From assembly GCA_977017575.1 (NCBI GenBank), contig CDRNVI010000156.1:124001-188000 (forward strand): a stretch of 64,000 bases of DNA, given 5' to 3'. A program made the position numbers and the translations under genes. Shown here piece by piece: positions 9,253 to 48,589 of the stretch (position 1 is its first letter; every line of letters starts with the position of its first letter). Under the pieces are notes generated by a model that saw only the letters and a list, made by a program, of their open reading frames with translations, had not been told where the DNA came from and made no database searches. Origin of the DNA: Paramoeba atlantica (Eukaryota; Protista; Discosea).

Positions 9253-12200
9253 ATGAAAGAGCAAAGAGGATTGTTAATCCTTCCCCTCTTCGTTCTTTTG
9301 ATCTTACATCAGTGTTTTGGAGATCAAAGGAGTTCGTCCGATCCAGAATTTGCTAAATCTTGGAACCTCAAGCCAACCTCGGCGATACAGAGAGGCCACA
9401 TCAATGTTCAACCAGCCTGGGATTTTGGTTTTACAGGAGCAGGTCGATTCTCTCTTTTTCTCTTTCTTTCATTCTTCTTCTTTCTTTTTCTGATCGCTTC
9501 ATTCTAAAGGGGTGACTGTTGGGCTTGGTAACCATGCCCCAAATAACTATCATTTAGAATTGAAAGGAAAATTAAGTTCTCACGTTTGTTTTTCTTCTGA
9601 TCTCTCTCTTTTTTTTTCACTTTGGGTTTTCGAAAAAGAAGGTTGGGGTTCTGACCACTCTTTTTCTTTCTTCTCTTCTTAGTCTCTTGAGATTTATGAA
9701 CGGTATCAAAAAAATATGACAACATCAGTTGTGGCAGTGGCACTAGGGAAAACAATGAATGGTGTTTGTAGCCGCGGTGTTGCTCATGGTGCTTCTTATT
9801 CAATGGTTGCCTTTGGGAGCCAGGTAACCAAGATATTCCTTTCTTCTCCTTTGATTGTTTTCTCATCTCTCAAAACAATTTTCAGGGATGGAAACATCTC
9901 GATTTTCTGGCAAGCCCTGTCCCTGTTGATATTTATATCAGAGATTTCGTTGGGAATGATAATCCCAAATCTAATAGCCAATGTACTTTTTTATGACTTT
10001 TTAAAAAACTTATTCACCAAAAAAAAAGAGAAAATTTTGAAGAAGGTCCTTATTTTTGGAGAAATAGGTACTAAGTGCTGGGACAATGTAAAGGCTGCGA
10101 TTGAACGAGAGAAAATCATCATTGGATATTCTGGTTTGAAGTTTTCGTCTTTCCCTCAAGGAAAAAGTTTCCTATTTCTTTTTCCTCCCCCTGATCTTTT
10201 TTATTCTTTTTCATCAGGAAATGGTGGTGAAGATGACAACTGCAATTATGATATGTACGCGAATGCACCATTTGTGATCAATGTTGGAGCTCATACAGCT
10301 GACGCTCAGCCTGCTCCCTATTCTGAGCACTGTTCTAGTATTGTTCGTTTTTGTTTCATCTTGATACATTGGTAGAATATATTTTTTGATGAACTGTTGT
10401 TGTTTTTTAGCTTGTTTCTGCTCCTGGTGGAGATAAAACACATGGAATCCCAACAGCCTCTGCTCGAGGTTCAGATTGTACCCACACAACATATGGTGGG
10501 GAACTTGCAGCAGCAAATACAGGTTTTACACATGACACATTTAAGAAAACGAAATTTATTTTTTTTTTGTTCTTTTTATTTATTTATTTTTTAATAAGCT
10601 GGAGTTGTTGCTCTCATGCTCGAAGCCAAAATGCATCACATTTCAGCTCGTGATGTTGCCCATATTCTTGTAGACAGTGCGAAATTCCCCCCAAAAGGAG
10701 TTTCGAGTAGTCAGAATGGGGCTGGAAGGGCCTACAATGACTACATTGGGTTTGGAACGATTGATGCTGGGGAGGCTCTTCGAAATACAATTCTCTTTAC
10801 TGGACTTCATTACCCAAGAGTTTGACCTTCTTTTACTTCTTTCCTTTTTTCTTTGTGGATTTTTTTTTAAAAATGAATTTCGTCCCAAAAGTCTCTAGTT
10901 CAACAAATGGCGTCTCACTCCATCCCTGATGGAGGAAGAGTGTCTCTCGAAGTTCCTTTTGAGTCAAATTACAATGTTGATTGGGTTTGAAAATCTTTTT
11001 CTCACTCTGTTGAAAACTTGGTTCATTGATTCATATAATAATGAATTATTTTTGTAGGTGACTGTGGAAGCAGACATTATCCACACTGCACCAGGAGATT
11101 TAGAAATTTCTTTGGTGTCTCCTTCTGGGACCACCGCTCGCTTGACCAAAGCGAGACATGCCTCAAAACGGCGTGTTAAATTCTCTTTTTATATATTTTT
11201 TCCCCCTTCTTCTCCTACACAATCACTCACTTCCTTTTGAAAATACAACAGTTACTCGCCGTTGTTTCTGCATCTAGAAAGACTTTTGCTTTTCATGTTG
11301 AACCAATTAATTCTGGTATAAATTTTCTCCCTTTGAGTTCATTTCAAGAGTCTCTGTCTCTTGAATAAATTAATAAAAAAAATTCATTCTCCAAAAAAAG
11401 GATCACGTACTTGGAAAGGAAGGGATCATGTTACCTTCTACACAACAACAGAAGATGGAGGTTGCTGTTCTCTCGGACGCAGCTGTTCTTTTACCCTGAC
11501 TCAGTTCCTTTTTTTTTTGAATTTTTTTTTTCCTGAGATTTCTTTCTATTATTCTCATTTTTTCTAATCTCTGATCGTTCGGTTTTCCTCTTTTAGACCT
11601 AAAGTTCCTGAAATCACTTACATTCTTGCTCTCAAAGATCATGGTCTCTGTCCTCCAGAAACCGAGTTGAGAAATGCTTTTAATCGCAACAACCCATACC
11701 AGCCTGATGTTGTGTTGCTTGGTATCTCATTTTTGAAATTTATTTTCATTCTCCTTTCTCCTTTTTTGTTTGAAGGTGACAAAAATTGTAGGAGGATCAA
11801 GGGCAAGATGGACACAAGTCTCACAGGGGAGAGGTGGCATCATTTTTGGTGTTTCAGATTCAGAATTCAGGTTTTTGTCGCTTTTTGGGTTGGGACTTTT
11901 TCAAAGCTCAATATTCTTATTAATTTTTGTGCCCACAACAGAGAGATTGATACACGAGTGGAGGATGCCAAATTATCAATTAGCAGCAAATATGATAAAA
12001 TTCCGGAACTCTCTTTGGAAGACTGGAAATTTTCAGCGACAAAATTCTGGGGTGAAAACCCAACAGGTTTTATTTTTCCTCAGTTTTTTTTTTGGCATGT
12101 AAATATTCATTAATTTAATTTTTTTTTTTCCAGGAAATTGGTTGTTTATGATTAAGGACACTGCCAAGCTTGACGAGGGAAGAGTCCAAAACTTTCAAAT

Positions 12201-12975
12201 GACTGTTTACTTATACAGCGACACGTTGCCAACCCCAACCCCAACCCCAAGTCCAACACCGACTCCAACACCAACTCCAACACCAACTCCTGCAATGAAT
12301 ATGAAATATTGCTGTGTTTATACCCATACCTCGAATTCTGGGTTGCATCAATGTAATCCAACGAATTCTGAAATCTGCCAGGAGTTCAGGGGGTGGGCTC
12401 TTACTTCTCAAACTCTCGTTCCAGAGGCTGAATGTGTAGAGATTTGCTCGAACGCTCCTACACCACCCCCTGCTGCTTTCAAACCTTGTTGTGTTTATTC
12501 TCACCAGTCGTATGACTTGCAACAATGTCTTCCTCTTGCTGAATGTTCACCATTTGGTGGTTGGACTCTTGTTTCGAGTTCGAGCATGTCTGAATCGGAT
12601 TGTGTGGCAAGTTGCGCTCCTTCGAATCCAACACCACCACCCGCTGCGTACAAAAAATGTTGCATTTATTCCCATGATTTCTATGATTTGAAGCAGTGCC
12701 TCCCTCTCACTGAATGTCAAGCGTTTCAAGGTTACGTTCTTCAATCCGATAATAGGATGTCTGAGACCGATTGTGTGAATGCTTGTGTCCCCAATAACCC
12801 AACACCCCCACCCTCCATCCCCAAAAATTGTTGTGTTTATTCTCACCAGTCGTATGATTTGAAACAGTGTCTTCCTGTGAAGACTTCTGTTTGTGAAGAT
12901 TTTCAGGGGTGGGCTCTTGATTATAATCAAATGATGGCAGAATCAGAATGTATGGATATTTGTGAAACAGTATAA
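9253..12975 (+). CDS. Kexin/furin-like S8B pseudoprotease K1: signal peptide, S8 domain, P-domain with PA-like insert, PT linker, 4 CCVY modules
   Basis: DPEFAKSWNL...INVQPAWDFGFTGAGVTVG...NGVCSRGVA...[14 protein letters not shown]...YSEHCS...[10 protein letters not shown]...GFGTIDAG; P-domain [12 protein letters not shown] and DWKFSATKFWGENPTG. Triad-equivalent residues D>N, H>M, S>E. Confidence 0.88.
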
Positions 12976-13194: not shown

Positions 13195-16100
13195 ATGAAA
13201 GTTCTTCTTCTTGTCTTTTTTTTGGTCTTGTTTAATGGGTGTCTTTGCTCTGAAGAAAGAAAGAATGGGAATGATCCCGAGTATTTTAGTGCTTGGAATC
13301 TCGCCGCCAAAGCAGGAGTTTCGACTGGTCTTCATCTTCTTCTTTTCACTTTTTTTCTTTCTCTGATTGGATCTTTCTTTAAAATAAAGGAAACATCAAT
13401 GTGGAAGAAGCATGGGATCTTGGTTATACAGGAGCAGGTTTGTCTTTAACTTTTTGACAAGTTGATAAAAAACAAAGAACCAACAAGAATCTTCTTTGAA
13501 GTTAAACTTTTCCTCTTTTCTTTTTCAAAAAGGAGTGACGATTGGGTTTGGTTTGAATGCTCCAAACCCAAATCACGTAGAACTTCAGGGAAAATTAAGC
13601 TCTCAGGTTTTTTTTCTTTTAATTAAAAATGCTCTCTCCCCCTCTCCTTTACCCTTTTTCTTCTTTCTCCTTTGCCTTACCATCGCTTTTCTCTTTAGTC
13701 TCTCTCTATATCTTCCCGTGATCAAACGAGCGAAGCAACATCAGTAGTTGGTGTGGCTGTTGCAACAGCTTTTAATCATATTTGTAGTCGTGGTGTTGCC
13801 TATGGAGCTCTTTTTTCCATGGTCGGCCTACAGAGACAGGTTTTTTCTCTCTCTCTCTCTCTCTTTTTGCTTATTGAGAGGTGTTTGGTAAATCACAATG
13901 ACAAAACAGAAGTTGAAAGGGCTTTCTTTTTTGGGAAGTGACATTCCAGCAGATGTTTATGTCAGAGATTTTGTTGGGAGTGATCATTTCTCAGCAAATT
14001 CTCATTGTATATTTTTTTTTGTCCTTTTTCTTTTTTGGGTGGGTTGAAACTGATGGGCTCCTTCTATTTGTGTGGTGCAGGTTCAAGATGTTGGGACGAT
14101 GTATTGGATGCTGTTGGACGCAAGAAAGTTGTTGTTGGATATAATGGTTGAGAAAAGATTTTTTTCACTCTTTCCCTTTTCGTGGTCTTTTGGCTCACAT
14201 GTTTTTTATTTCTTCGCACAGGGAATGGTGGGAAGAATGATAATTGTAATTATGATATGCATGCTAATGCTCCATTTGTGATTAATGTTGGATCTCACAC
14301 TGCTGACGGAATTCCTGTTGATTATTCTGAACCATGTTCCGCTCTTGTATGTTTTTTTTCTTTCCTCAAATCTATATTTTATTTCCTTTAATCAAATATT
14401 TTAGCTTGTTTCTGCTCCTGGAGGAGATGATAAACATAGAGTGCCAACAGCCTCTTCAACAGACTCAAGTTGCGGACATGTTTCGGGTGGACAATATGCA
14501 GCTGCACATACAGGTCTTTCCTTTTTTTTGATCAATCATTTCTTCTGCATCTAATTCCCCTTTTCTCTTTCATAATAGCTGGGGTTGTGGCTCTCATGTT
14601 GGAAGCAACCAACCACCGTCTCTCTCCTTTTGATATCGCTCACATTCTTGTTGAGTCTGCAACTTTCCCACCTCAAGTGCGAGGAGAGCGGAATGGGGCT
14701 GGATTGTCGTATAATGATCAAATTGGATTTGGGATGATTGATGCTGGAAAAGCAGTCAAAAACGCTCTGCAATATCCAGGACATTTTTATCCATTGGTAT
14801 TGTCAATTCTTTAATTCATTCTTTTTTTCAATTCTGATTTGATTATTTGTGGAATTGTTTTATTCCCCAGCCTTTGTTTTATCGCCTTGAGGCGCCTCGA
14901 GATCTTCCAGACAAAGGGTCGGTGTCGATTGAAGCCTCTTTTCAGTCGAATTATTTCGTTGATTGGGTTTGATTTGATTCTCCAAAACAGCCAAATTTGA
15001 ACTATTATGATTTGATTTTGAGAATTGACTGTTGTTTTGGTAGGTGACTGTTGATGTAGATATTGCTCATGAGTCAGTGGGTGATTTGGAAATATCTTTG
15101 ACTTCTCCTTCTGGGACAAAAAGCGTTTTTTCAAACTACAGGCACTCAACGAATCGTGGGGTTTGGAATTTTCTTTTTTTTCTTTTTAACAAGACTTTTT
15201 TCTCTCCTCTCAATATCCGAAATAGTTCCAAGCTCTTGTTAAGAGTGCAGAAGGATCATTCTATTTTTTTACTGAACCAATTAATGACGGTTTTGCGCTT
15301 TTCTTTTTTTTTAGTTTGTTTTTTCTCTCTCAAAACTAAACATTTTTCTTTCTTCTTCAGGGGCCCGGTCTTGGAGCGGAGCCAATAATGTTATCCTCTT
15401 TTCGCCAATTACTGATGGAGCTTGTTGTCAATCAAGTAGTTGTGTTTATACTTACCCTGGGTTCCTCTTTGATTTTTGAATGAATTTTCAAAAGGACCCT
15501 TTTGTTCTCTAATTCTATTTTTTTCACAGAGTGGAGAAGGACCCTGACACGGTTTATATTATTGTTTTGAAAGCTCATGGAATGTGTACCCCAACAAGAG
15601 AATTGCTCATAACCCAGAATCGGCGGAGAATCACCCCAGATATTGTCTTTGTCGGTTTGTCTTCTTTTCTTGATCTTTTTCATTTGAGACAATTTTTTTT
15701 TTAATCATACAAATTTGAAGAGGGAGATAGGACAAGTTTTACAGAACTAATCGATCAGAAACATATGCTGGTCTTTGGTGTTTATTCAGAGCAGTTCAGG
15801 TTGTGCTTATTTTCCTGTGGTTTCTGTTTTTTCAAAAAATATTAAAATTTCCAATTTTTTCAGTCGAATCCAGCTTCCTGAAGGAAACGGGAAAATCACC
15901 ATCTCCCAAAAATATAAAAAAATATCTGGTCTCTCTTTTGAAGACTGGAAATTTTCATCCACTAAATTTTGGAATGAAAGTCCTACAGGTAAAATTTTTG
16001 GATTCTCATTTTTTTGAAGAATTTTTTTTTCTTTTTTTGAAGCAAACATTCAAAACAGGATCTTGGCGGTTTAAAATCCATGATAATGCCCAATTTGACC

Positions 16101-16912
16101 AAGGAATACTCCAAAACTTGACTCTCACTCTTTACATTTACGGAATCAATCCTTCATCTCCCATACCCACTCCAACACAAATTCCTTCCCCGACCCCAAC
16201 ACCAACACCAACACCAACCCCAACCTTCTCTCCAACTCCAACCCCAAGCCCAACTCCCACCCCAACTTCAACACCAACACCAACTCCAACCCCAACTCCA
16301 ACACCAACACCAACTCCAATTGCTTCCTTGGATCATCGAACTTGTTGTGTTTACTCCAGAATGGGAACTCCTCAAGTGAAACTTTGCAGCCCAACAGCCT
16401 CTGATGAATGTAAAATTTATAATGGATGGGACTTTAATTACCAGACCCTCGCCACTGAAGTTGAATGTGTGGACATTTGTAATGCAGAAACTCCTACCCC
16501 ACCTCCTGTATCTGCTCTGAAAAAGTGCTGTACTTACGTTCACGATTTGTCCAATACAAAGCTCTGTCTTTCGGTAAACAGTTGTCAAGATTTTCCAGGT
16601 TATTATCTTGAGTCTGAGACACCGATGGATGAATCTGACTGCGTTACGAGTTGCGATTCTCATCCAGTTGGTCTGGCCACTCCAACCCCACTTCCAATTC
16701 CATCACCAACCCCAACACCAACACCAACCCCAACTCCAACCCCAACTCCACCACCAAAAACGTGCTGTGTTTATTTCAATGAACAATATCAGTTAAGTCA
16801 GTGTGTTCCTCAGGATGAAGAGGATTGTGATCAGTATACGGGGTGGGTGATAGATGCCAACCTTTTCCTTCCAGAAAGTGAATGTGTCAGCATTTGTGAA
16901 GCTTTAACATAA
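13195..16912 (+). CDS. Kexin/furin-like pseudoprotease K2 (3 CCVY modules)
   Basis: MKVLLLVFF signal; DPEYFSAWNL; GVTIGFGLNAPN (D>L); EATSVVGVAVATAFNHIC (H>E); [16 protein letters not shown] (S>Q); GNGG and DNCNYDM retained. Confidence 0.88.
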
Positions 16913-17099: not shown

Positions 17100-20000
17100 A
17101 TGAAAATCTTTGCTCTTGTCATATTCTTTATTTTATTTTTTGGAGGTTTTTGTCAAGATCCTGATTTTTCAAAAGCTTGGAACCTTATTCCCACAAGAAA
17201 AGTGCCAGTTGGTCTGTTTTCTCTTTTTTTTTTACCTCTCCCTCTTTTCGTTTCTGATCTGATCGGTTGAATTCTTTTTTCTCTTTCTTCTTTCTTGAAA
17301 AGGAAATCTCAATGTTGAAGAAGTGTGGAGTCGTGGTTATACAGGAGAAGGTTGTCTATTTCTTTTGGGAACCTCGAAGAAAGAGAAGAAAGAGAAGAAA
17401 AGAAAAAAGAAAAGATTCAGATTTGTGGAAGAGGATTATTTTTTTTTGACTGAGGAAAATCTTTTTCATTTTTCAAGGAGTTACGCTTGGCTTTGGTTTC
17501 AACGCTCCAAATCCAGATCATGAAGAACTTCAGGGAAAATTAAGCTCTCAAGTTTTTCTATTTCTTCGATTCATTGTTATCCAAACTTCCTTGTTCTTAT
17601 GCAAGTGTCCTTCTCTCTCTCTCTCTTTCCTCTTTTAGTCTCTAGAGATCAATTCACATGACCAAAGTGACGCAACATCAGTTGTGGCGATGGCTGTGGC
17701 AAATGCAAACAATGGTTTTTGTAGTCGTGGAGTGGCGTATGGGGCGCTATATTCGATGGTCGACATGAAAGAACTGGTTTTTTCCCCTTCTTTTTCTTTC
17801 TTTTGAGCAAAATTATTTTGTTTGATTTTTGAGAATGATCTCTCAATTTTGTCAGAAATGAGAAAAGAGAAAGAAAAAGAGAATCAGCCAATTTTGCCAA
17901 TTGGATAATAAAAGACAAGCAGGGGTCGGAAGGATATTCTTTTTTGAGGGGGAATATTTCAGCTGATATTTATGTGAGAGATTTTGTTGGAAGTGATGAT
18001 CCTATGTATAATGCTCCATGTATTTTTATTTTTCTTGTGATTTTATTTTTCTTTTTAAATTTTAAAATGGCTGTTTCAATGTTGGATTCCTTTCTTCTTC
18101 TTTTGTTAATTCCTTTGATTTTTCTTTTCCAGGTTTAGAGTGTTGGGAAACTTCAATGGAAGCACTTAAACTTAACAAAATTATTGTTGGATTTAATGGT
18201 TCATTTCCCCCCCTTTATTTCTCAATGTTTTGTTTTTAGAAGATTCTCTTCACAGGAAATGGTGGTCCAAGTGATAATTGTAATTATGATATGTTCGCAA
18301 ACACCCCTTTTGTGATAAATGTAGGATCTCACACTGCTGATGGAATTCCTGTTGATTACTCTGAACCATGTGCCACAATTGTAAGTTTTTTTATTCTTCT
18401 CTTGAAAGCAACAAACAATGCATTAAAAATGGTTGTAGCTGGTTTCTGCTCCTGGTGGAGATCAGAAACATCGGATGCCAACAGCAGCCTCAAATTCAAG
18501 GGAAAGTTGTACACAGGAATCAGGAGGACAATATGCAGCAGCACAGGCAGGTTTTTATTTTTATTAGAAAATAAAATCGAGAATTAGGATAGATGTCTCT
18601 GATACATTCATCTTTTTTTTCAATTAGCTGGAGTCGTGGCTCTCATTATTGAAGCAACACAGCACACTCTTTCTGCTGCCGATATTGCTCAAATTCTTGT
18701 TGAGTCTGCGAATTTTCCATCTCATGTTTCAAAAGAGCGAAACGGGGCTGGGTTGTGGTATAATGATCAAATTGGATTTGGGATGATTGATGCAGGAAAA
18801 GCAATCAGGGTAGCTCTTCAGTATCCGAAACATTATTATCCTCAGGTCGATTCATATTTTTTCAAGTTTTGATTTCGTTTCTGCTCTTTTTGATCCATGT
18901 TTTTGCGCAGCCTCTGAGTTTTCGATCGGAAGAAGTTCATCATCTTCCAGACGGAGGGGTGATGACACTCTCACCCACTTTTCAGACGAATTCATATACT
19001 TTCATTGATTGGGTTTGATCTATTACTGTTCCAAAATTTTTAATTTTCGCTAACCAAGAAATCGAATTTGGTAGGTGACTGTGGAAGTAGATATCGATCA
19101 TGATTCAGCAAGTGATTTGGAAATATCTTTGATTTCTCCTTCTGGTACAACAAGTGTTTTTACCAGAGCGAGGCATGAGATCGTTCATCGGGTATTTTGG
19201 TCTCTCTTTTTTGAAAATTCATGTGATTTCTAATTTGAGTACAACTGATTCAGTTACGAGTTACTCCCCATGGTGCACGGACATTTGATTTTCGTGTTGA
19301 ACCAATCAATGAAGGTTTGATTGATTTCCTTTGTGTTTCAACTGAAAATCAAATTGATGTCCCCTTTTAGCTGCCCAAACATGGAAAGGGGCCAATGATG
19401 CTGTCTTTATTACCATCACTGGTTCTTGTTGTCGCTCCACTGACTGCTCGATTGGGTTTTTTATTTTATTATTTTCATTCCATGTGTTCAATTTTTATCG
19501 TCTTGTCGCTTTTTCTTTTTTCTGAGCGATCTGATAGAACGAAGATATCTGGGACGACTTCCATTCTTTTGCTCGAACAACAGAAAATTTGTACTCCCTC
19601 GAAGCAAATTCTTGTGATAACAAGCCAGCATCCCGTCCCAGATGTTATATTTGTTGGTTCGTAGCTGCTTGCTTCTTTTTCTTCCCTTTTCTTTCATAAC
19701 CTTTTTCATTTCCGATCTTAGAGGGAGAGAGGAGCGATTGGTCAAAGATAACACAACGAAGACATGGTGTGACCATCTTTGGTGTTCTTCCAAGTGATTT
19801 TGCGTTCTCTTTTTGCATTTGTTTTTTCCAATCTTTGAGTTTGAGTTTAATTTTTGAATTTTTTAGGGATATCAACCCAACTCAGCTGCGCTTTGGCATA
19901 GAGAAAATCTCTGACTTTTCATATGAAGACTGGAAATTTTCATCAACAAAATATTGGAATGAACATCCCTCTGGTGATCTTTTTTCTTTTTTCTTTTGGC

Positions 20001-20458
20001 TTTCCTCTCATTTTTCCAAATGACTTATTTTTGAAAAAGGAACTTGGCAATTTACAATTCATGATAAAATCCCTCTTCACCAAGGAATCCTTCGAAATTT
20101 TTCACTCACTCTCTACTTGAACACTCTCATTCAGCCTTCTCCAACTCCAACACCAACCCCACTCCCAATTCCAACTCCAACTCCAACTCCAATTCCAACT
20201 CCATCACCAACTCCGACACCAATCCCAAGCCCAACTCCAACTCCAACACCAACACCAACACCAACTCCACCTCCAACACCAACACCAACCCCAGTGCCAA
20301 ACAAAATTTGTTGTGTTTATTATCATGAAAGCTTTAATTTGAATCAGTGTGTTCCACAGGATTCAGATGTTTGTGAAGAGAAAAAACCTCCAGGTTGGAT
20401 CGTGAACGCAAAGCTCAGTCTCCCAGAGTCTGCCTGTTTGGGGATTTGTCTCACATAA
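17100..20458 (+). CDS. Kexin/furin-like pseudoprotease K3 (1 CCVY module)
   Basis: [10 protein letters not shown] signal; [10 protein letters not shown]; [12 protein letters not shown] (D>F); [18 protein letters not shown] (H>D); [11 protein letters not shown] (S>Q). P-domain, insert and tail exons splice in frame. Confidence 0.87.
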
Positions 20459-22356: not shown

Positions 22357-22489
22357 AACCCGCGGAGAAAACGGAAAATAAAACGGACCAAAGTTTTGGA
22401 AAACAATTTTTTTCCAAAAATGTTCCGATTTGGTGTTGTTTCCTGTTGCTTTCTTCTCCATTCAGTTATTTATTTTAGGGAATTTTTAT

Positions 22490-25400
22490 TTATTGGCACC
22501 CTCTCGTGCAACCTTGAACATCTGTTTGAAAGGAGAAAACAAGAGTGTGGTCTTTCAGATCTTCGCAATATCTTGCTGGGAGGCATGTTCGCTCTTGTGT
22601 TTTGGGTTGAACATACACACAACAGAGCAATACAAAAGGAGTTGGGGTTGGAATTGGGGGTGTTGGGGTTGGAGTTGGAGTTGGTGTTGGAGTTGGAGTT
22701 GGTGTTGGAGTTGGAGTTGGAGTTGGGATTGGTGATGGAATTGGGGTTGGAGTTGGAGTTGGAGTTGGAGCTGGTGTTGGAATTAGGATCGGGGTTGGAG
22801 TTGGGGTTGGGGTTGGTGTTGGAGTTGGTGTTGGAGTTGGGGTTGGAGTTGGAGTTGGGATTGGGGTTGGAGAAGGCGTCGGAGTTGGAGATGGGGTTGG
22901 GGGTAAACAAAAAGAATAGCACATTGGTTCATTGACCCAGGAAGAAGAGAGAAAATCCCAGCCCTCTCCTTCACGATGGATGTCACAAGAAGAACTATCT
23001 GTGGGCACACAATCTAAAATTGAAGGTCGAGAGATCCATGAATAAAGACAACAATTTCGAATTGGGAAGGGGGTTGGTGTTGGGGGTGGGGTGGGGGTTG
23101 GAGTTGGGGTTGGAGTTGGGGTTGGGATTGGGATTGGGGTTGGGGTTGGTGGTGGAGTTGGGTTTAGAACTGGAGTTGGGTTTGGTGTTGGAGTTGGAGT
23201 TGGAGTTGGGTTTGGTGTGGGAGTTGGAGTTGGAATTGGAACTGAGGTTGGAACTGGTACTGGAGTGGGAGGAGCACAAAATAAGTCGCATTCATCCTCA
23301 TCATGGTTCATGATCTCTTCAATGAGCTCCCACTTTGGTAGATCTGGGCAATTCTTCTCGAGAGTCAAACATTGCTTCACAGAGGGCGCACTTTTAAAAT
23401 AATAAACACAGCAATTTGGTGTGGAAGTTGGTGGTGAAGGTGTTGGAGTTGGTGTGGGAGATACAGGATTAAGCAATGAATAGGTATTGAGAATCAATTC
23501 AGATGAATGAAGCGTGCCAGAATCACCAGCAGTTAAATCACTGATTTCGATTGTCCATATTCCTATTACAATTAACAACACTCAATATTACAAGTTGAAC
23601 AACAAAGAAAAAGAGGAGAGGAGATGGACCTGAGACAGGTTCTCGCCAATGTTTCGTTGAGGAGAATTTCCAATTCTCAAATGAGAGAGGCATTTTATTG
23701 GCTTCTTGGTTCGGTTCTACCCTCAAGGTGTGTCCTATTCCGGACCGTCCCAACCGGAAGTCACGAGCACTGATAGAAAAAGCAGGGATTCCTCTCAGAT
23801 GTGGTTCGTAGATGTCGTGTTCCTCTAAAATCAAGAGTGGTTATTGGACATTGCAAAAAGTGAGATTTTGAAAGAGAACTTCCAACCAATAAAAATTGCA
23901 TCAGGAAGAAAATGGCCGCTCCTCGGGTTGAATATTTCAACAATCTCTTCGTGTTGAGTGCACATTTGATGTTTCCCAAGCAACAATAACGCAGTCACTC
24001 CAGGAGTTTTTCTAATTTTGGAAAAAGATTAATTCAACGAATGTGTTTTGGAACAAGTGAAAGAAAAAACTCTGGGAGAGTAAAGGAGCAGGAACTTCTC
24101 TCGCAACAATTTCCCAATTCTGTGGTTGAATACAAAACCACTTCATCTCCTTCCCATGTATCTCCAGCTGGCCAAGATTTAGAGATCAAAATTTTGAATT
24201 AATTTGAATCCATCAGCTTAAAATTGAACCTTGAGTTAGAGACACAACCGGAATAGAAAGCGTTCGATTTGGCAAATGAAACAACAGAGAAAACTTTTGA
24301 ATATCAATTAAAATCATTTTCCAAACAGATTTGAAAGGAAAGTGAAGAAAAACCTCTTCAGATTTTTGGCTTCTAGGAGAAACCAACTCACTCCGTGTAC
24401 CAGAAGGTGAAATCAGTGAAATCTCCAAATCACTTGGTTGTTCATGAAGAATATTGACTTGCAATGTGACCTATCAAAATAAAAATCATTTCAAAATGAA
24501 ATCATGAGAATTGAAATATCATATCTCTTTTCAAACCCAATCAACAAAGCGATTTGTTGTTCTCTTGATATTGAGAGGAATGCTAATTGTACCAGGATCA
24601 GGAATAGATTTCGTGACCGCGAGGTCTACAACAATATCCTAAGAATAATGTGTCAAAAAAAAGAGAACATCAATTTTTTGTGGAGAGAAAAAAAGAACGA
24701 ACATCTTCTGGGATGAGAGTATAAGGGAGACTATCCTCTGCTGCCATTCTGACAGCTTTTGTTGCATCAATTGGACCAAATCCAAGCTGAGAAAAAAAAT
24801 AGTGAATAAGGAAGGAACACAAATATTGTCCACCTAATTATGATCTTCTTCTTCAAAGAAATAAATAAGTATTTACTTGACTCTCAAAATAAAGACCAGC
24901 TCCATTTTTCTGAAGATTGGGATAATCTTCTGGAAAAGAAGAAGTTGCAACAAGAATATGAGCAATTTCTCGAGGAGTCAATGGCTTTGAACTCGCTTGT
25001 ATCATCAATGAGACCACTCCAGCTACAAATCACTTTAATTTTTGATGAAAAGAGGAGAGAAGGTGTTAAAGAGAAGCAAACCAACAATTGCAGCAGAATA
25101 TTGACCACCTGTTCGTTCAGAACACGATTCTCCATCACCATAAGGAGTTGGTATCCCTTGGAGTGAGGATCCTCCAGGAGCAGAGACCAACTAAAAACAA
25201 GAATTACAAAAAATAACATGGTTAAAAAAGTGATTTGAAAAGATCTTAAAAAAAACCGCATTTGCACAAGGTTCTCCAAAATCACTTGGATGACCACCTA
25301 ACATATGAGGTCCCACAGAGATTGAAAATGGGTGATTGGAGTACATATCATAATTACAATTATCTCGCCTTCCTCCATTCCCTAAAAAAAAATCACATAA

Positions 25401-26355
25401 TTAATCATTTTTCTCTTTTGATTTGGTCATTTCTCTGTAAGAAAGTCATCTTGAGGAACCTGTAAAAGAAATGACAACGACCCCACGATCAACAGCATTT
25501 CGCACAGATTTCCAACACTCATCACAAGGAACATTCCCAAATCCCCCATCTGCGGCAGTGAAAGTTTGAAGAAAGATGTCAGGAGAATCCAAATACAAAA
25601 ATTTCAAATCAAGAGCATTCGCAGATCCAAGACCAACAATCGAATAAGATGCTCCATGAGCCACTCCTCTTGTACAAGCACCATTAAAGGCGGTTCCAAC
25701 AGCAGTCCCAATGACAGATGTTGCTACTTGGGAAGGATTCTGGACAGAAACCTGGGAAAGATATTTTGGTTTTTCTTCCTCCATTGGAAAGAAGGAAAAG
25801 ATGAGACTAACCTCTGGATTCAGGTGACCAATAAGATCTTGATGATCAGGATTTGGACCAACGAAACTGATTCCGATTCGAGTTCCTATGATTATGTTTG
25901 TGAATCTTTTGCCAAAGTTTTGAGATTCAGTTCTATAGCAAGCAATTTTTCTTTTGACAAAATTAAGATTTGAAAAGGGAAACCTTCTCCAGTAAATCCC
26001 ATCTCCCAGACCCGTTCCACATTGATATGTCCTTGTTCCCGAAAGTTCAGAAAGAAACGAAAAAATCAAGAAAAAGGGAATCAAGAAACAAGAAAAAGAA
26101 AAACTGACCATCAAGTTTGGCATATGGGTCAGTCGACTCCTCATAAGCAATGGAATGGAGATGCCAAGAAGAAGGAAAGAGGGGATCAAGATCATCAAAC
26201 TTTGGGTGCTCCTCTTCCCATTCGGGTTCATCTCCCCACGAAATCCCTCGAGTAGGATGAACAGGAGAGTCTTGCCAAGAAAACTCAACAAAACTTGCTG
26301 AAGGGATAAGGAGGGTAACCACCAAAGAAACCCAAAGAGAGAATGAGAGTTTCAT
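22490..26355 (-). CDS. Kexin/furin-like pseudoprotease K4 (3 CCVY modules)
   Basis: MKLSFSLW...VEFSW leader; [10 protein letters not shown]; [12 protein letters not shown] (D>F); [18 protein letters not shown] (H>V); [16 protein letters not shown] (S>Q). Insert contains [11 protein letters not shown]. Confidence 0.87.
22640..23270 (-). repeat. Coding (ccaac[a/t/c])n microsatellite-like tracts encoding Pro-Thr linkers (longest example; similar tracts in all ten K genes)
   Basis: Hexamer runs such as ccaactccaacaccaacc here and at 12230-12290, 16160-16320, 20140-20290, 33170-33250, 33630-33790, 42640-42830, 48760-48900 and 49070-49510. Confidence 0.9.
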
Positions 26356-26637: not shown

Positions 26638-29600
26638 TTATTTTATTCCTTCACAAAATCTACAATCACTATTGAATTCTACAGATATGAGCCTCCATTC
26701 ACTCAAATCAAGACAATCTGCGTGAGAGAGAAGACATTGAATGGAAGAGTCACGGAAAGAAGAATAGACACAACAGTTTGTTGGCGCAGGAGTTGGGGTA
26801 GCAGGTGGGGCACATATTGATTTACATTCAGGTTCGATTACTTCTGTATGAGATATGAGTCTCCATTTTGGGAGGTTGGGGCAATCAGAAGTTTCAAGAA
26901 CCACACATTGATTGACAGATGGGTCATTGGGAAAAGAATAAACACAACAATTGATTTTTTGTTCCACTGGTGCTGGGACTGGAGTTGGTGTTGGGGTTGG
27001 TGTGGGGGTCGGTGTTGGAGTTGGAGTTGGAGATGGAGAAAAAAATGGTGTTGGAGTTGGTGTGGGGGTCGGTGTTGGAGTGGGAGAGGGAGGGCTCATA
27101 CGAAATAAATAAATTGTGAATACCAAATCTCGTACTCTTCCCATGTCTTGAGCAACCTGATCTTCAATTCGAAATTCCCAAGTTCCTTAGAATTTAAAAA
27201 TAATAATTTTAATTCAAAAGTTCAAATGTATTTTTGATTGAAATGAAGGGGAGAAACATGAAAACCTGTTGGATTTTCATTCCAATATTTTGTTGACGAA
27301 AATCTCCAATCTTCCAATGAAAGATTATCAATTTTTTCAACACCAGGAAGAATTTTGATGGTAGAATTTTCCACAGAAGAGTCAATTTCTCTAAATTGGA
27401 TTTCAAAAAATAAATCAAAAGGAATTTGGAAAAAAGACCAAAAGAAGGGAATTCCACTAAACTGAAAATCATTTGCAGGAACACCAAAAATAGCTCCACC
27501 ATCTCGCTCTGAGATTCCATTCCAAATGCTCTTCGATCCCTCTAAAAATATTTGTTGATCAGCAAAAAATACTAAGTGAACACGCGTAAACTGCGGGGGG
27601 TGTGAAAAGAGAAAATGAGGACCAACAAACACAACAGTTGGCAGAAAAATACGAGGATGATCATAAATATTCTCTAATTCTGTCTCAGCCGAACATTTCT
27701 CATGCATTTTTAAGAGGAGAATGTGTGTCGTTCCAGAAATTGCTTTTCTGTTTGTTTTAGTTAGTCCAAGCAGTAAGCACACGCCATGAAAAAAAGAAAA
27801 GAACCCAGAATCAGTTATGAAGGAACATTTCTGTGGATTGCAACAAATACCAAGTTTCTTGGGTCTTAGAAAAACTACCTCTTCACCTCCTTTCCATAAC
27901 TTGGCCTCTATTGATTTGAAAAATTTGAGATTGAAAAATTAATGAAGAAAAATGATAAATATATCAAAACTGGCATTAATTGGTTCAACTGGGAAGGAGA
28001 ATAATGTTTTAGATCTGTTAATCACATTCCCGACTAACTGTGAATTTTCAAGGTATAAGAAGAAGAGAAAAGGAGACACAAAGAAGAGAGACAAAAAACA
28101 TCGTTTGTCAGTGTTTGTCTCATTTTTGTGAAGACACTTCTCGTCCCAGCCGGAGAAACCAAAGATATTTCTAAATCAGCCGGTGATGAATGCACAATAT
28201 CAGCATGTACAGTTACCTAAAACTATTCTGTGAATCTGATTTCCTCTTAATTTTCCAACGGGTACACACAGAAAATGAAATGTGAATGCAAACCCAATCA
28301 ATCGAATACGGTGAAGTAAACGAAGTTTTAATCGCCAATGTTCCTTTATCAGGAATTAAAGGGCCAGTCCGGATTCGATTCACTAATGGCTAAAAGGGAT
28401 TCTTTAATTTTACAAACAAACAATGAATGATTAATAAAAACTTTTGACCGTCATTTTTGTGATGCCAGGAAAGGTGGATGCCCTTCGAACAGCCTTCCCA
28501 GCATCAATATAACCAAACCCAATTTGATCATGATACATCAATCCAGCCCCATTCTGTTCTCCGATAATTTGTGATGAAGGAAAAGTTGAAGTTTCCACAA
28601 GAATATGGGAGATATCTTGAGAAGAGAGATGACGGGGACGACTAGCTTCGAGCATTAGAGCAACAACTCCAGCTTGAAAAAGGGAGGAAATTTTAAGATA
28701 GAAAAGAGAAAACTGAACAAAAGGGAGGATAAAAAAAACCTGTAGTTGCTGCAGCCACTGAACCACTAATTTGATTTGAACAAATTGAATTGTGAAAATA
28801 AGCAACAGGTATTCCAAGAAACTTATCTCCCCCAGGCGCAGACACAAGCTAACAGAAAATAGAAATTAATTTTGAACTCATACGACAAAAAACATGAAAT
28901 ATCTCTTACGATGCTTGAACATGGTTCAGAGTAAGAAGAAGGGTGATAATGAGCAGTATGAGACCCGACATTGACCACAAAAGGTGGATTTGCGGACATA
29001 TCATAATTGCAATTGTCACTCTCACCACCATTTCCTGGCAAAAGAAATGAGTAAAAACAGAAAAAGTAAAAGAAAAAAGAGGAAAATAACCATTATAGCC
29101 AATGATAATTTTCCCTTCATCGACAGCATCTAAGACATTATCCCAACATTTCTCACCTATCCCAAAACAAGTTTTTAGAGCTTTCTAAATTCCAGCAAAC
29201 CGAAGAAAAAGAACTTACATAGAAATTGGGTTGATGAATTATCACTTCCTATGAAATCTCGAACGTAGAGATCAACTGGAATATTACTCTCTAGAAAAGA
29301 AAGATCCTTTATTCCCTATTCTCATTGTTCAATACTCTTCACTTTCCTTTGGAGGAGGAAAAAAGAAAAAAAATTACTTACCTCTTCGGAGCTGACCATG
29401 GAATAAAGGGCATCATAGGCCGTACCTCGAGTGCAAACATCATTGAAAGCAGCCCCAACAGCTAAAGCAACAATCGATGTTTTCATTGGATCAGAATCTC
29501 GTCGTGAGATTGGTAGGGACTATTCACATTCGTTTTCAATTTTTAAGCATCTCAAAATCATTTTCAAAATTTTTGCTTTTGAAAATGATTGTTCAACAAT

Positions 29601-30329: not shown

Positions 30330-33300
30330 ATGAGACTTTCCTTTTTTTTCTTCTTTTTTTGGTTGTGCCAAAGATGCTCGCTTGAAGGTCCCGATCCAGA
30401 TTATTCTCGATCGTGGAATCTCCACCCAACACCAGAGGTTCAAAAAGGTATTCTTCCTCTCTTTCTCCTTCCCTTTTCGCAAGGAAAACAGTCTGACATT
30501 GTTTTGAAAGGTCATCTTAATGTGCAAGAAGCATGGAATCACAGTTACACAGGAAAAGGTTTCTCTTTCTTTCTCCCCATCCCTCTTTTTGTTCTTTTTT
30601 TTTATTGTTTGTTCCCTCTTCGAAGGAGTAACGATTGGGTTTATTGGAGAGGGCCCTTTTCCAACCCACTTAGATCTTGAAGGAAAATTGAGTCCTGAGG
30701 TTCATTTATTTGTTTTTAAGAGGAAGAAACAATCCTTAAATAATCTGTGTCCCTTCACAGTCTTTGCGGATCTTGTCACAAGATCAGAGTTCACGCAAAA
30801 CATCCGTTGTTTCTGTGGCTGTGGGAAAAGCATTTAATAACGTTTGTAGTCGAGGTGTCGCTTATGATGCTCTTTACTCTCTCGTTTCGAAACAAAAGGT
30901 AAAACGGATCTCTCAAATTGTGAACGAATTCACGAAAATAAGGCTGATCTGAAAAACAGGAAGTAGATGAGTACTCTTTTCTGGAAAGTGCAGTCCCTGT
31001 TGATATATATGTTCGAGATTTTGTTGGAACTGATAATCCAAAAAAGCAAATCTCATGTAATTTATTTTTAAATTTCTCAAATTTTGAATTTTTGAGAATA
31101 ATATTTTCTTTCTTTTTGATTAGGTACGGAGTGTTGGGAGAATGTGCTGAATGCAGTTGGCGAAAACAAAATTATTATTGGATTTAGTGGTTTGTTATGT
31201 TTGGGAACTTTCTTTCTTTTCAACTCTCCTTCTCACTTGAAATTTATTCACAGGAAATGGAGGAAAGGATGATAATTGTAATTACGATATGTACTCCAAT
31301 CCTCCCTTTTTGATCAATGTAGGTTCTCACACTGCTGGCTATGTTCCATCTTCCTTTTCTGAAACCTGTTCGAGTCTGGTATGCAAAATTTCTTTGGGTG
31401 ATTTTTTTTTTGTTCTTATTTCTCCGAATTAGCTTGTGTCTGCCCCAGGAGGAGATGAAGAACTCGGAATACCTGTCTCTTATTTTAAAGATTCAATCTG
31501 TACCAATCAATTTGGTGGCGCAACAGCTGCGGCACATACAGGTCAGTGTTGTAAAGTTGTTTTTTTTTCAGAGTTTTTTTTCATCTAATTGAATTTCTGA
31601 ATAGCTGGAGTTGTTGCCTTAATGTTAGAAGCGAGTCATGGGAGTCTTACTCACCGTGATGTGGCTCATCTTCTTGTGGAGACTGCCAATTTTCCTTCTG
31701 GGTTCGAAGGTCAACGCAATGGAGGCGGATTGACTTATCATGATCGGCTTGGATTTGGGTATATCGATGCTGGAGCCGCTGCAAAGAAGGCTGCTTCGTT
31801 TCCTCCATACTTGTATTACCCGGTCAGAATTTGCTTGTCCCACCAAATTTGTCTGCAATATTTGCACCTTTTTTGACTTGAATTTCTTCCTTTTAGCCCC
31901 TCTTTAAGCATATTAGGTATGGAGGTCCGATTACTGAAGATGATATTCTGACAATGGAAATCGACTTTGAATCTGACTATTTAGTTGACTGGGTATGAAT
32001 TAAAAATGATCTTGCCTTTTTAAGAGCTGCTTAATTTTAGTTTTGACTCATGATGATTTTTAGGTGACTGTGGAAACCGATATCACCCACAGATCACCAG
32101 GAGATTTAGAAATCTCTTTGATTTCTCCTTCTGGAACTCGAAGTGTCTTCGCAAATATGAGACAAAGAATCACAGATAATGTTGAATCAATTTTCTTTCT
32201 CCTTGATCATTGAATAATTATCTAATATTTTTGCAGTTTGAAGCCAAAATTAGTGCGGGTTTTCAAAACACATACTCCACGGGAGTCTTTCCCTTGAGTC
32301 CAGGTTTTTACTCTTTGGGGATGGGAGGGGGATCTTAGGTCTTTCAAATTTATTTAATTTTCATTTTGAATAGAGGCTGAATTATGGGAAGGAGGAAAGG
32401 GTGTTGTGTTCCTGCTCCCCAAAAAAGAAGGAGCATGTTGTAGCGTTGCAAGATGTAAATTTCGAACAGAATCAGGGTTTTCTTTTTGTTTTTTACTTAG
32501 TAATTTTCAAATTGTGTATTAATTTTTCATCGACTCCAAAAGAGAGGTGATTCAAGGGACAACGTATATTTTGTTACTTGCAGCTCAAGAGATTTGTTCA
32601 CCTGAGATTGAAATTTCAGTTATTTTTGATCATACTCGTGTCTTTTTCCCAGATGTTGTGTTTGTTGGTTCTCAATTTTTCTCTCTCTTTTCTCCCTTTT
32701 TTTTGTTTGCTGACCTTCGGGGGAAAGAGGGGGATAAGGGCGTTTGGTCAAAGATTCCTGAAAGGAGTGATGTTCTAATATATGGAGTTTTTGCGAGCGA
32801 TTTTCGGTTTTTCTTTCTTTCTTTGGTGTGAGATGAGACGAAAAAAAAAGTTCTAATTCTTTTGATTGAAGGAAAATTGACGCAAGCCAGGAAAATGCTG
32901 ATATTAAAGTTCAGACACTCATTGAGAAAGTTCCTGATCTTTCATTTGAAGACTGGAGATTTTCATCAACACAATTTTGGAATGAAAATCCAACAGGTTT
33001 TCATTTTTCTTTCTTTTTTTCTTTCTTTAATTGAGAACCCAAAAAAATCTCAAGTCGCCATTTTTATCAACATAGGAACTTGGGTATTGAGAATTGAAGA
33101 TCAAGTCAAAGGAGATGATGGAAGACTTAGGGACTTGAAAATGACTATTAATCTTTTTGGGACCACCCCACCAACTCCATCACCATCACCATCTCCTCTT
33201 CCCACACCAACCCCAACCCCAACTCCAACACCAACGCCAACACCAACACCGACCCGAAGCAGGTCAATTTGTTGTGTCTATGCTTTTCCCCAGGAAGTTA

Positions 33301-34121
33301 GCATCAAACAGTGTTTGACACTGGAAACAACAACTTGCCCTAATTTGCCAAAATGGAGACTTTATTCTCAAACAATGGAGTATGATAATGAATGTGAAGT
33401 ATATTGTGCTCCCCCTCCTCCTGCACCAACACCTACCCCAACGAGAGCTCCAACACCAGCACCAACCCCAACACCAACTCCTGCACCGATAAATTGTTGT
33501 GTATATTCTGCTATCCATGATTCTTCCCGCATTCAGTGTTTAGAAATTCAAGGAAGTTGTCATAATTTAGTGAATTGGAGATTGATATCTGTCGAATTTT
33601 ACAGCGATTGCCAATTTTGTTATGCTCCTTCCCCATCCCCAACTCCAACACCTCTCCCAATCCCAACCCCAACCCCAACACCCACTCCACTTCCAGTTCC
33701 AACACCAACATCAGTTCCCACCCCAACTCCAACAGTTCTAACCCCAACTCCAGCACCATCACCAACACCAACACCAAACGTTCCAACACCTGTCTCTTTG
33801 AAAAATTGTTGTGTTTATTCCAATCGAATGAACCCAGAACTGAGCCAATGTCGTGCAACAATGTTTGATGAGTGCCAAGAGTACAATGGTTGGAATCTAG
33901 ACCATAAAACGCTCAGACCTGCGTCTGAATGTGTGGAACTCTGCACCACTCTCACTCCAATCAAGATCCAAAACTGTTGTGTTTATTCGAATCAAGTCGT
34001 CCCAAGTTTGAAATTATGCCTTCCGACTGATTCAGATCAATGTGGATTTGTGCCGAATTGGGTTATTGATTATAATACTTATCTTTCAGAAGGGTCATGT
34101 ATGGAATTATGTGAATCATGA
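30330..34121 (+). CDS. Kexin/furin-like pseudoprotease K6 (4 CCVY modules)
   Basis: MRLSFFFFFF signal; DPDYSRSWNL; GVTIGFIGEGP (D>G); RKTSVVSVAVGKAFNNVC (H>R); CTNQFGGATAAAHTAG (S>A). Confidence 0.87.
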
Positions 34122-37300: not shown

Positions 37301-37935
37301 CGTTATGTGCCCCTCCTTCTCCATCCCCCTCACCAACCCCATCTCCTTCGCCAGTTGCCCTGAAAAATTGTTGTGTTTATGCCCACGTGAGCGCAAGTTC
37401 TTTGAAACAATGTCGACCAAGCAGCTTCGACACTTGTCAAGAATTTACGAGTTGGGTCCTTGATTACAAGACTCTCATTCCTGAAACAACTTGTTTGGAA
37501 ATATGCACTGCAACACCAACTCCTCCTCCAACTCCAACACCAACACCCGTTTCCCCTACACCTGTGAAAAATTGTTGTGTGTATTCTTACGAGAAAAACT
37601 CCGAAGTGAAGCAATGCAGGCCAAAGAGCTATGGTGATTGTCCACCATCGAAAGGTTGGAATTTTGAATTTAATTCATATGTAACAGAACAAGATTGTGT
37701 GGGACTTTGTGAAGCCACGCTAGCAACACCAACTCCTCCCCCCACACCAACACCCACACCTACTCCACTTGCAGCTGAACCACCCAAAAATTGTTGTGTT
37801 TATTTCTATGAGTCCAATTCTGCTGTGAACCAATGCCGACCAACAAATTCGGTTGTTTGTCAAGATTTTGGTGGATGGGTTCTTGATTATAAGACATCTA
37901 TTCCAGAATCAGAGTGTTTGGGTCTCTGTTTTTGA
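34361..37935 (+). CDS. Kexin/furin-like pseudoprotease K7 (4 CCVY modules)
   Basis: MKLFFIWG...VEFSW...REKR..DDPLYSSSWHL; GTRIGTGFLAPN (D>F); IATAALGTIVATANNNVC (H>I); GGQYAAAIVAG (S>Q). Confidence 0.87.
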
Positions 37936-42300: not shown

Positions 42301-43215
42301 TTTTTTGGTGATGCAGCAATCAAGCAATGTTTGACACTTGAAACAGATTGCCCAGATATCTCGAATTGGGCGCTCACTGCCCAGTCAATAGAATATGAGG
42401 AGGATTGTGCTGCTCATTGTGTTGCTCCCACTCCCACTCCTACCCCAACCCCACTCCCAACTCCATCCCCAAGTCCATTCCCAAGTCCATCTCCTGCTAC
42501 AAGCAACTGTTGTGTCTATTCTTTCATTCATGATTACAACATCCTGCAATGTCTTGAGATGACAGTTCCTGAATGTGCCCAGTTGTTCAACTGGAAGCTC
42601 CTCTCTGTTGAATATAATAGTGACTGCCATTTTTGTGACCCCCCTTCTCCCACTCCTTCTCCATCACCAACTCCCACACCAACACCAACCCCAACACCAT
42701 CTCCTAGCCCAAGTCCAACTCCAACACCAACCCCAACCCCAACCCCAACACCAACCCCAAGTCCAGCTCCAACTCCAACTCCAACACCCACTCCAACTCC
42801 AACCCCTACTCCAACCCCAACACCCCAATTTATGTCAAACTGTTGTGTCTACAGTCTCGTTTCTGATCCGTCAATCAAAGAATGCATGACCCACACTTCA
42901 AATTGTCCCAGATTACCAAACTGGATTCTGAGTTATGCATCAATAGATGTTGTTGATGACTGTTTCAAATTGTGCACGAATTCATCTTCTCCCTCTCCCC
43001 CAGCCCCTTCTCCCTCTCCCACACCTTTACCACCAACTCCATTATCACCAACTCCAGCACCAGTTTCTTACAAATATCGATGTTGCCTTTATGAGTCATT
43101 TTTTGATGACACAAGATGTTTTACCTATCCAAATGAACAGTGTCATGAATTACAAGGATTAAGATTCTATGATTCATATCCAATTCATGTTCCAGATCAT
43201 TGTGTGTGTCATTAA
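39339..43215 (+). CDS. Kexin/furin-like pseudoprotease K8 (4 CCVY modules)
   Basis: MKLFFVYF...VEFSW leader; [10 protein letters not shown]; [12 protein letters not shown] (D>F); [18 protein letters not shown] (H>V); [16 protein letters not shown] (S>Q). Confidence 0.87.
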
Positions 43216-46300: not shown

Positions 46301-46530
46301 AAAAAGAGAAGAAAAAAAAAACCAGTTTGGATCTCTGAAGTGGAGTGGAGGTGCCATGACTCGGCATAAAGAGGGTCGCTTTGTCCTTGTTCTCTCTTCT
46401 CGCTCCTGGACAGATCTCCTCCGGTTACTAAATTCTGTCTCACACTTCCACAATCTTTCCAAACAAAATCATAAGCTTGAAGGGGAGAAAGAATTGTGAA
46501 GAAAACCAGAACAAAACAGATCAAACTCAT
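43396..46530 (-). CDS. Kexin/furin-like pseudoprotease K9 (uninterrupted P-domain; 2 CCxY modules flanking an extra ~120-aa domain)
   Basis: MSLICFVLV signal; DPLYAESWHL; GVRIGHGFQSP (D>F); [18 protein letters not shown] (H>I); GGQYAASMTAG (S>Q). P-domain reads [34 protein letters not shown] with no insert. Confidence 0.85.
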
Positions 46531-48494: not shown

Positions 48495-48589
48495 AAACCA
48501 ACAAGATTTAAAAACAACAAAAAAAAAGCAAAAAAACTTAATCATCCGAAAAGGGCCTCTTTATTGGCAAATTGTGATTTTAATTTTCC

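Follow-up and report, generated by a model that had tools for sequence, protein, structure and literature searches.

CBM1, the fungal cellulose-binding member of the carbohydrate-binding modules (CBMs), is a small three-stranded sheet stabilised by disulfides, with conserved aromatic residues and a Pro-Thr-rich linker, and often lies at the C-terminus. The six-Cys domain of Entamoeba Jacob and the eight-Cys domain of Acanthamoeba Leo are lineage-specific repeats of secreted proteins, separated by Ser/Thr/Pro spacers. In animals, a C-terminal Cys-rich domain tethers PACE4 and PC5A to the cell surface. This domain binds cell-surface heparan sulfate proteoglycans in PCSK6 and PC5A, and the heparin site of PACE4 is basic (PMC9656567). 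Here we analyse a 64-kb stretch of the 45.7-Mb Paramoeba atlantica genome, C156:124001-188000, referred to as the window, in which ten genes with kexin/furin-like heads (K1-K10) end in copies of a six-cysteine module, which we call the CCVY module. That this module is a new extracellular domain restricted to the Paramoeba lineage is well supported.

Thirty modules with six invariant cysteines

The genes were delimited by exon-wise tblastn with a database protein, P0003, and by the open reading frames of the tails, and their heads were read exon by exon and through the database transcript. The ten genes identified with P0003 lie on both strands at about 9.3-52.3 kb of the window, and each has modules as its 3' end. 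A regular expression applied to the six-frame translation of the window gave 28 modules, and a hidden Markov model (HMM) built from these 28 matches them with E-values of 4e-7 to 2e-18. Only the HMM recovered the two divergent modules of K9 (minus strand, 44237-44097 and 43539-43402; E about 1e-5). The remaining six-frame HMM matches in the window are background, with E > 0.4. A reading made from the letters alone (the sequence-only reading) had counted 30 modules, distributed over K1-K10 as 4, 3, 1, 3, 2, 4, 4, 4, 2, and 3. The regular expression and the HMM together recover all 30 and give exactly this distribution.

The pattern measured on the 30 modules is CC-x(10-13)-C-x(5-7)-C-x(16-21)-C-x(1-3)-C, with a length of 41-49 residues. 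The six cysteines are invariant in the window as well as in the full set of 57 modules that we collected. Tyr4 is present in 29 of the 30 and is nearly invariant among the 57. A Gln precedes Cys3 in 20/30 modules, a Trp follows Cys4 in 21/30 and is replaced in the other nine, and 26/30 end in C-x3-C. The consensus proposed in the sequence-only reading, with its fixed C-x3-C end, misses a short subtype ending in C-x2-C. With net charges from -9 to +1 and a mean of -3.6, the modules are acidic; each contains three to eight Trp, Tyr, or Phe residues, and only two N-glycosylation sequons occur in all 57. About half of the modules have Lys or Arg at position -2 or -3 before the CC pair, often with Asn at -1. 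Those with the basic residue are mostly of the subtype B described below (K-N-CC), for example at 12820-12828. The basic residue and Asn upstream of CC suggest that the domain may begin a few residues before the first Cys.

The linkers are 10-94 residues long, and Pro, Thr, and Ser make up 40-91% of them. Separation by Pro-Thr (PT) linkers, as had been described, is the rule except in K9, whose two modules are parted by a domain of about 128 residues and an intron. The tail of K1 illustrates the usual layout. Window positions 12290-12975 lie inside a single open frame (12142-12975, plus strand), which runs from the last strand of the P-domain through a (PT)n linker to four modules, and the stop codon at 12973-12975 is three residues past the final Cys.

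The modules end secreted kexin-like proteins

P0003 matches the Pfam families PF00082 (Peptidase_S8, E = 6.6e-11) and PF01483 (P_proprotein, E = 5.7e-17), and its best relatives in PDB are Kex2 and furin (E = 7e-30). It thus has the layout of kexins and proprotein convertases, namely Peptidase_S8 followed by the P-domain. Aligned with Kex2, P0003 (K9) has other residues in place of the catalytic Asp175, His213, and Ser385 and retains only the oxyanion Asn. Having lost the triad, the K9 head cannot cut. A clear signal peptide is found at the start of K4, K7, K8, K9, and K10, and K6 probably has the same layout. In K4 and K7-K10 the mature S8 domain starts 20-50 residues after the signal peptide; hence, these five genes have no prodomain. 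A single exon, read in one frame, encodes the end of the P-domain, the PT linker, and the modules. In every K gene the stop codon comes 1-6 residues beyond the last Cys, which leaves no room for a membrane span or a glycosylphosphatidylinositol (GPI) signal.

Two transcript contigs from the same sample carry head and tail together, indicating that both parts are transcribed and spliced as one mRNA. The contig L034 (2477 nt) encodes P0003 and aligns, spliced, with window positions 46055-43272 (K9) at 93-100% identity, and at 99-100% over most exons. The first 374 nt of L034 correspond to the 5' end of K10 (52336-51907), and its nt 799-1230 match neither K9 nor K10 at 90% identity or above. With the 5' end of K10 and the body of K9, L034 is probably an assembly chimera of two paralogues, and database gene models of the kexin-like family should accordingly be used with care. 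The second contig, L035, is full-length and encodes P0008, which is composed of S8, the P-domain, and three modules. Its locus is absent from the 45.7-Mb assembly, where only the Pro-Thr linker finds matches, at 73-82% identity. Either the assembly is incomplete for the kexin-like family, or the sample contains a second strain. The Pfam match to the P-domain of P0008 falls into two separate stretches (residues ~300-490), which fits a large insert inside this domain; no PA domain was matched in P0008 at E <= 0.1.

The domain between the two K9 modules has the motifs FVG...TWSY-ITSGS...FYV-LA-C. It has a relative in P0002, a protein from a related organism, and within its own genome only K9 matches. 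A Pfam search with this domain is blank. In a feature search of the ESM atlas it scores 0.89 to a green-algal cluster, 27% of whose members have DUF3707 (pherophorin). This is a weak lead, and sequence searches gave no support to a pherophorin link.

The predicted fold matches no known family

We predicted the structure of the module with AlphaFold2 from two alignments. The model from the 30-module alignment (model 1) has a predicted local distance difference test score (pLDDT) of 88.9, with β-strands at residues 2-6, 12-15, and 28-33 and a helix at residues 38-44. The model from the 57 modules, headed by a sequence of a different subtype (model 2), has a pLDDT of 83.8 and an identical strand-strand-strand-helix layout.

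The module matches no known family by sequence. Searched singly against Pfam at E <= 10, with a library including the CBM_1, CBM_14, Chitin_bind_1, ShK, EGF, Furin-like, and chemokine models, the 30 modules gave no consistent match, and the module region is blank when whole tails are searched. A sequence profile search of PDB with the module is likewise blank. A word-indexed protein search with the P0008 tail returned only the query itself, Pro-Thr words having swamped the 8000 candidates. Structure searches gave nothing meaningful either. The best Foldseek matches in PDB have E-values of 2 and 8 for the two models, and exhaustive structural alignment with VIA against 48,161 chains reached best Z scores of 3.5 and 3.3, which is noise. 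The shape search of the ESM atlas found no neighbour above noise, its best rows being GIY-YIG and MbtH with template-modelling (TM) scores of 0.65 and 0.53, respectively, and the feature search with one module gave at best 0.75, again noise. Unrelated cytosolic, Cys-free proteins (MbtH-like, aRF1, and MCM) top the lists of both models with Z <= 3.5, and their recurrence reflects a simple shared topology rather than kinship. As structure searches are weak at 45 residues, the absence of a known fold is provisional.

We then compared the module with individual families. CBM1 (PF00734) is not matched, and it has four Cys in about 36 residues compared with six in 41-49. CBM14/peritrophin-A (PF01607), with six Cys in the peritrophin spacing, is not matched at E <= 10; its pattern does not begin with two adjacent Cys. 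CBM18/hevein (PF00187), with eight Cys rather than six, is not matched, nor are ShKT (PF01549) and EGF (PF00008), which are all-helical and two-hairpin folds, respectively, compared with the predicted three strands and helix. As to Furin-like repeats (PF00757/PF14843), the tails, P0003, and P0008 show only Peptidase_S8 and P_proprotein. The sequence-only reading had proposed a new family unlike CBM1, CBM14, CBM18, ShKT, and EGF, and had named a profile search, fold prediction, and Foldseek as checks. Carried out here, these checks gave no confident match to an existing family, and none of the five families was matched in Pfam by the 30 single modules at E <= 10, so that the proposal is supported by the Pfam, PDB profile, and structure searches alike. 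The module recalls CC chemokines in its N-terminal CC pair, three strands, and C-terminal helix; this candidate was rejected, as Pfam gave no IL8-family match and the structural matches listed include no chemokine. Also rejected were three-finger toxins and the MAX effectors of Magnaporthe, whose Z scores of only 2.0-2.7 are within noise.

Module subtypes are ordered along the tail and conserved

A tree of the 57 modules resolves four subtypes, A, S, B, and T. Subtype A (signature CP-LP-W, support 94/80) is nearly always the first module after the P-domain. The short subtype S (C-x2-C end, support 98/93) is nested in A and always comes second. Subtype B (GW-LDY...E-EC, support 97/87) occupies middle and last positions, and subtype T (support 96/82) is mostly last. 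When the modules are labelled as first, middle, or last, the label changes 17 times on the tree, compared with 25.4 ± 2.1 times after shuffling; none of 1000 shuffles, and one of 1000 shuffles within genes, reaches 17. The gene of origin hardly clusters (40 changes versus 43.1). Clustering by tail position rather than by gene indicates that most tails are ordered arrays of differing subtypes and not simple multiples. Because paralogues inherit positions, this clustering describes history, i.e. the ordered tail predates most of the gene duplications. A related species (L031) has the same position-specific subtypes, the A-then-S order among them, which makes the layout an old one.

Copy number has changed in both directions. 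Modules 2-4 of K1 and module 2 of K2 form one starred clade in the tree, which points to internal duplication. A paralogue of K4 lies about 105 kb downstream (C156:251750-256100, minus strand) and shares 90.6% DNA identity with it, introns included. At a site where K4 consists of nothing but linker, this paralogue retains a short S-type module, which K4 has lost. The paralogue may be broken, its large S8 exon having an open frame of 179 residues compared with 301 in K4. The earlier idea that valency is tuned by copy number is thus borne out insofar as copies were gained (K1 modules 2-4) and lost (K4), whereas most tails are not uniform multiples but are ordered by position. For the three modules shared by the K4 pair, the ratio of nonsynonymous to synonymous substitution rates (dN/dS) is 0.29 (0.10-0.36) at a dS of 0.30, as calculated from the last exon only, since the frame of the paralogue breaks in the S8 exons. 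Judged by this ratio, the modules are under purifying selection.

The module is confined to the Paramoeba lineage

The profile search read 1.84 billion representative proteins and returned 12 matches at E <= 0.001. One of them is a false positive caused by low complexity, which leaves 11 real relatives. These have CCVY or CCWY modules, mostly on Pro-Thr or Pro-Ser linkers, and their upstream part or neighbouring gene, where visible, is S8 or a P-domain. They include P0003, which is K9 itself, and P0008, from the transcriptome sample that also yielded P0003; the remaining ones are singletons from metagenome or run assemblies. Contigs of two relatives share repeat families with the Paramoeba atlantica genome at 70-89% identity, and a third shares almost no DNA with it, so that at least two or three other related organisms carry the domain. 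In the literature on Paramoeba and Neoparamoeba kexins, surface coats, and cysteine-rich proteins, we found no description of the domain or the gene family.

Within the genome, a scan of C156:94001-288000 found 50 modules, comprising the 30 of the window, three at 212 kb, and 17 at 251.8-276.3 kb. Kexin-like exons precede almost all of these. One or two further modules are on C169. Terminal modules of the CCWY type, split by an intron, are on C158 (L051, 178001-184468), C139 (L055, 221001-231000), and probably C175 (L054, 22001-32000). The intron lies just before the final C-x3-C, and the second halves are found in L051 and L055 (for example ...DCESFC and ...DCFSFC). Such split modules are undercounted by exon-wise searches, and the assembly lacks the P0008 gene; hence, our census of modules is a lower bound.

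The genes and modules of the window are listed in Table 1. GC content peaks at 0.43 and 0.42, with GC skews of +0.30 and +0.36, at window positions 22001-24000 and 48001-50000, respectively. These peaks are a coding-repeat effect of the long Pro-Thr linkers of K4 and K10, both on the minus strand, and mark no separate landmark.

Table 1. Kexin-like genes and CCVY modules of the window. Module coordinates were taken from the regular expression and the HMM, and subtypes from the tree of 57 modules.
Feature	Position	Strand	Description
K1	9328..12975	+	4 modules; 5' limit approximate
K1 module 1	12310..12447	+	subtype B
K1 module 2	12487..12615	+	subtype B
K1 module 3	12658..12786	+	subtype B; Tyr replaces Trp
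K1 module 4	12829..12963	+	subtype B; first sequence of model 1
K2	13735..16912	+	3 modules
K2 module 1	16343..16480	+	subtype B
K2 module 2	16526..16654	+	subtype B (CCTY)
K2 module 3	16763..16897	+	subtype B; sister to the K3 module
K3	17645..20452	+	1 module
K3 module 1	20309..20449	+	subtype B
K4	22490..26325	-	signal peptide; 3 modules
K4 module 1	23276..23413	-	subtype A
K4 module 2	22907..23053	-	long-branch member of subtype B
K4 module 3	22496..22624	-	subtype T (terminal type)
K5	26638..29480	-	2 modules
K5 module 1	26812..26949	-	subtype A
K5 module 2	26653..26775	-	short subtype S; C-x2-C end
K6	30716..34121	+	4 modules
K6 module 1	33270..33407	+	subtype A; first sequence of model 2
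K6 module 2	33495..33620	+	subtype S
K6 module 3	33807..33944	+	subtype B
K6 module 4	33975..34112	+	subtype B
K7	34361..37935	+	signal peptide; 4 modules
K7 module 1	37171..37308	+	subtype A
K7 module 2	37369..37506	+	subtype B
K7 module 3	37573..37710	+	subtype B
K7 module 4	37792..37929	+	subtype B
K8	39339..43215	+	signal peptide; 4 modules
K8 module 1	42286..42420	+	subtype A
K8 module 2	42508..42636	+	subtype S
K8 module 3	42841..42975	+	A-related
K8 module 4	43081..43209	+	very divergent; C-x-C end; unplaced
K9	43399..46515	-	signal peptide; 2 modules; Asp, His, and Ser all replaced
K9 module 1	44097..44237	-	CCYY; unplaced
K9 middle domain	43573..44033	-	about 128 residues, between the modules; intron 43800-43874
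K9 module 2	43402..43539	-	CCWY type
K10	48590..52306	-	signal peptide; 3 modules
K10 module 1	49193..49324	-	CCVF; A-like
K10 module 2	48905..49042	-	subtype B
K10 module 3	48611..48745	-	T-related

Discussion

We favour, with a probability of roughly 0.55, the reading that the CCVY modules are a real, independently folding extracellular domain whose secreted tails anchor dead furin-like heads in the surface coat. Each module would fold into three strands followed by a C-terminal helix, with three disulfides holding it together. The modules form the extreme C-terminal tail of secreted kexin/furin-like proteins, with the PT linkers probably acting as stiff, O-glycosylated stalks. Since neither a membrane span nor a GPI signal is present in these proteins, attachment most likely falls to the modules. 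They would bind, without a covalent link, some component of the coat on the amoeba's own surface, glycan or protein, and the dead-protease head would be displayed outward as a binding surface. PACE4 and PC5A offer a documented precedent for such tethering. Our data show the domain, its conservation and selective constraint, its confinement to the lineage, its lack of known relatives, and its gene context, whereas we infer the disulfides, the glycosylated stalks, the anchoring role, and the ligand. Some points weigh against this reading. The catalytic triad was aligned to a structure for K9/P0003 alone, the estimate of selection comes from one paralogue pair with 138 codons, and the K proteins may diffuse away rather than stay on the cell. 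A bolder version, which is tentative and clearly less probable, takes CCVY as an unseen fold-level family for surface anchoring, possibly by binding glycans. Its four subtypes may dock different coat components, and the dead furin-like proteins may be peptide-recognising receptors for prey, symbionts, or self.

Several other functions can be envisaged for the modules. They may be strict carbohydrate-binding or lectin modules, which would hold a polysaccharide (chitin, cellulose, or a glycan of coat or prey) via Tyr and Trp and gain avidity from their copies. Small modules rich in disulfides and aromatic residues on PT linkers do recall the architecture of fungal CBM1, Tyr4 is nearly invariant and Trp common, and K1-K3 carry four, three, and one copies of a single subtype with internal duplications. 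We nevertheless consider this doubtful, as no CBM or lectin family searched is similar in sequence or fold, the partner is not a glycanase but a dead protease, nine of the 30 modules lack the Trp, the modules as a whole are acidic, and most tails are ordered arrays of different subtypes. Self-made chitin or cellulose was rejected as the ligand because the genome gave no signal for chitin synthase (PF03142) or cellulose synthase (PF03552), although this is a weak negative, the search having been exon-wise and the genes intron-split. Somewhat less probable still is a role in assembly, in which the modules would be protease-resistant knots that pair with each other or with coat proteins, possibly by disulfide exchange, to build a mucin-like matrix. 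The position-specific subtypes would suit a distinct partner at each position, the stalks of up to 94 residues would suit a matrix, and the middle domain of K9 and P0002 weakly resembles the DUF3707 pherophorin matrix proteins, a lead unsupported by sequence searches. However, six invariant cysteines are an even number and fit closed intramolecular disulfides.

We regard it as very unlikely that the tails are polyproteins from which cleavage of the linkers frees 45-residue toxins or antimicrobial peptides against prey or competitors. The size and Cys content are typical of secreted peptide toxins, and a Lys or Arg precedes the CC pair by two or three residues in about half of the modules, but the similarity to three-finger toxins (Z 2.1-2.7) is at noise level. 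No dibasic sites flank the modules, and the linkers are Pro-Thr-rich and probably glycosylated. Their strong acidity sets the modules apart from most membrane-active peptides, and the attached protease head is dead. Similarly improbable is that the module belongs to a known family that diverged too far to be recognised, such as the furin-type Cys-rich repeats, CBM14, or an amoebal cyst-wall lectin domain. It does follow the P-domain, as the Cys-rich repeats of furin, PC5, and PACE4 do, short Cys-rich domains evolve rapidly, and structure searches are weak at this length. Against kinship of this kind, Pfam is blank for the 30 single modules and for whole tails, the PDB profile search is blank as well, and the two models share as best matches the same unrelated cytosolic Cys-free proteins with Z <= 3.5.

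The CCVY module joins the few known small disulfide-rich extracellular modules as a well-defined, foldable, and lineage-restricted member, and it goes with a large expansion of kexin-like genes, among which K9 at least is catalytically dead. No new kind of biological system is involved; orphan Cys-rich modules on low-complexity stalks are common in protists. In the literature searched, we found no molecular description of the Paramoeba surface coat. If the modules act as coat anchors, they would offer a means to isolate and label the coat in Paramoeba and its fish-pathogenic relatives, and would also be a case of a protease scaffold turned surface receptor.

Comparison with known systems

The only recurrent structural neighbour is the MbtH-like family (PF03621), which has three strands and a helix and aligns over about 43 residues with TM scores of 0.53-0.58. 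MbtH-like proteins are cytosolic bacterial partners of non-ribosomal peptide synthetases and contain no Cys, and the match is noise (Foldseek E 2-8, Z 2.4-2.6). The likeness is one of shared simple topology, not kinship. The cyst-wall lectins Jacob and Leo, which we set beside the modules by description, are likewise lineage-specific Cys-rich amoebal repeats with low-complexity spacers. They differ in binding chitin or cellulose in the cyst wall, whereas the Paramoeba atlantica genome shows no synthase signal (a weak negative). CBM1 resembles the module in being a small disulfide-bonded unit with aromatic residues, joined by a Pro-Thr linker to a larger domain. However, with about 36 residues and four Cys it has no helix, the Paramoeba partner is not a glycoside hydrolase, and the modules match neither Pfam CBM_1 nor its structure. 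Similar in architecture are PACE4 and PC5A. The Paramoeba modules differ from the furin-like repeats of these proteins in matching none of their models, in their Cys pattern, in their predicted C-terminal helix, in the long PT stalks between them, and in being acidic, in contrast to the basic heparin site of PACE4. In addition, the K9 head lacks the catalytic triad, and the prodomain is absent wherever the 5' end is readable. Aside from these differences, PACE4, PC5A, and the K proteins have the same order of parts, with a signal peptide, a subtilisin-like domain, a P-domain, and tandem C-terminal Cys-rich repeats free of a membrane span.

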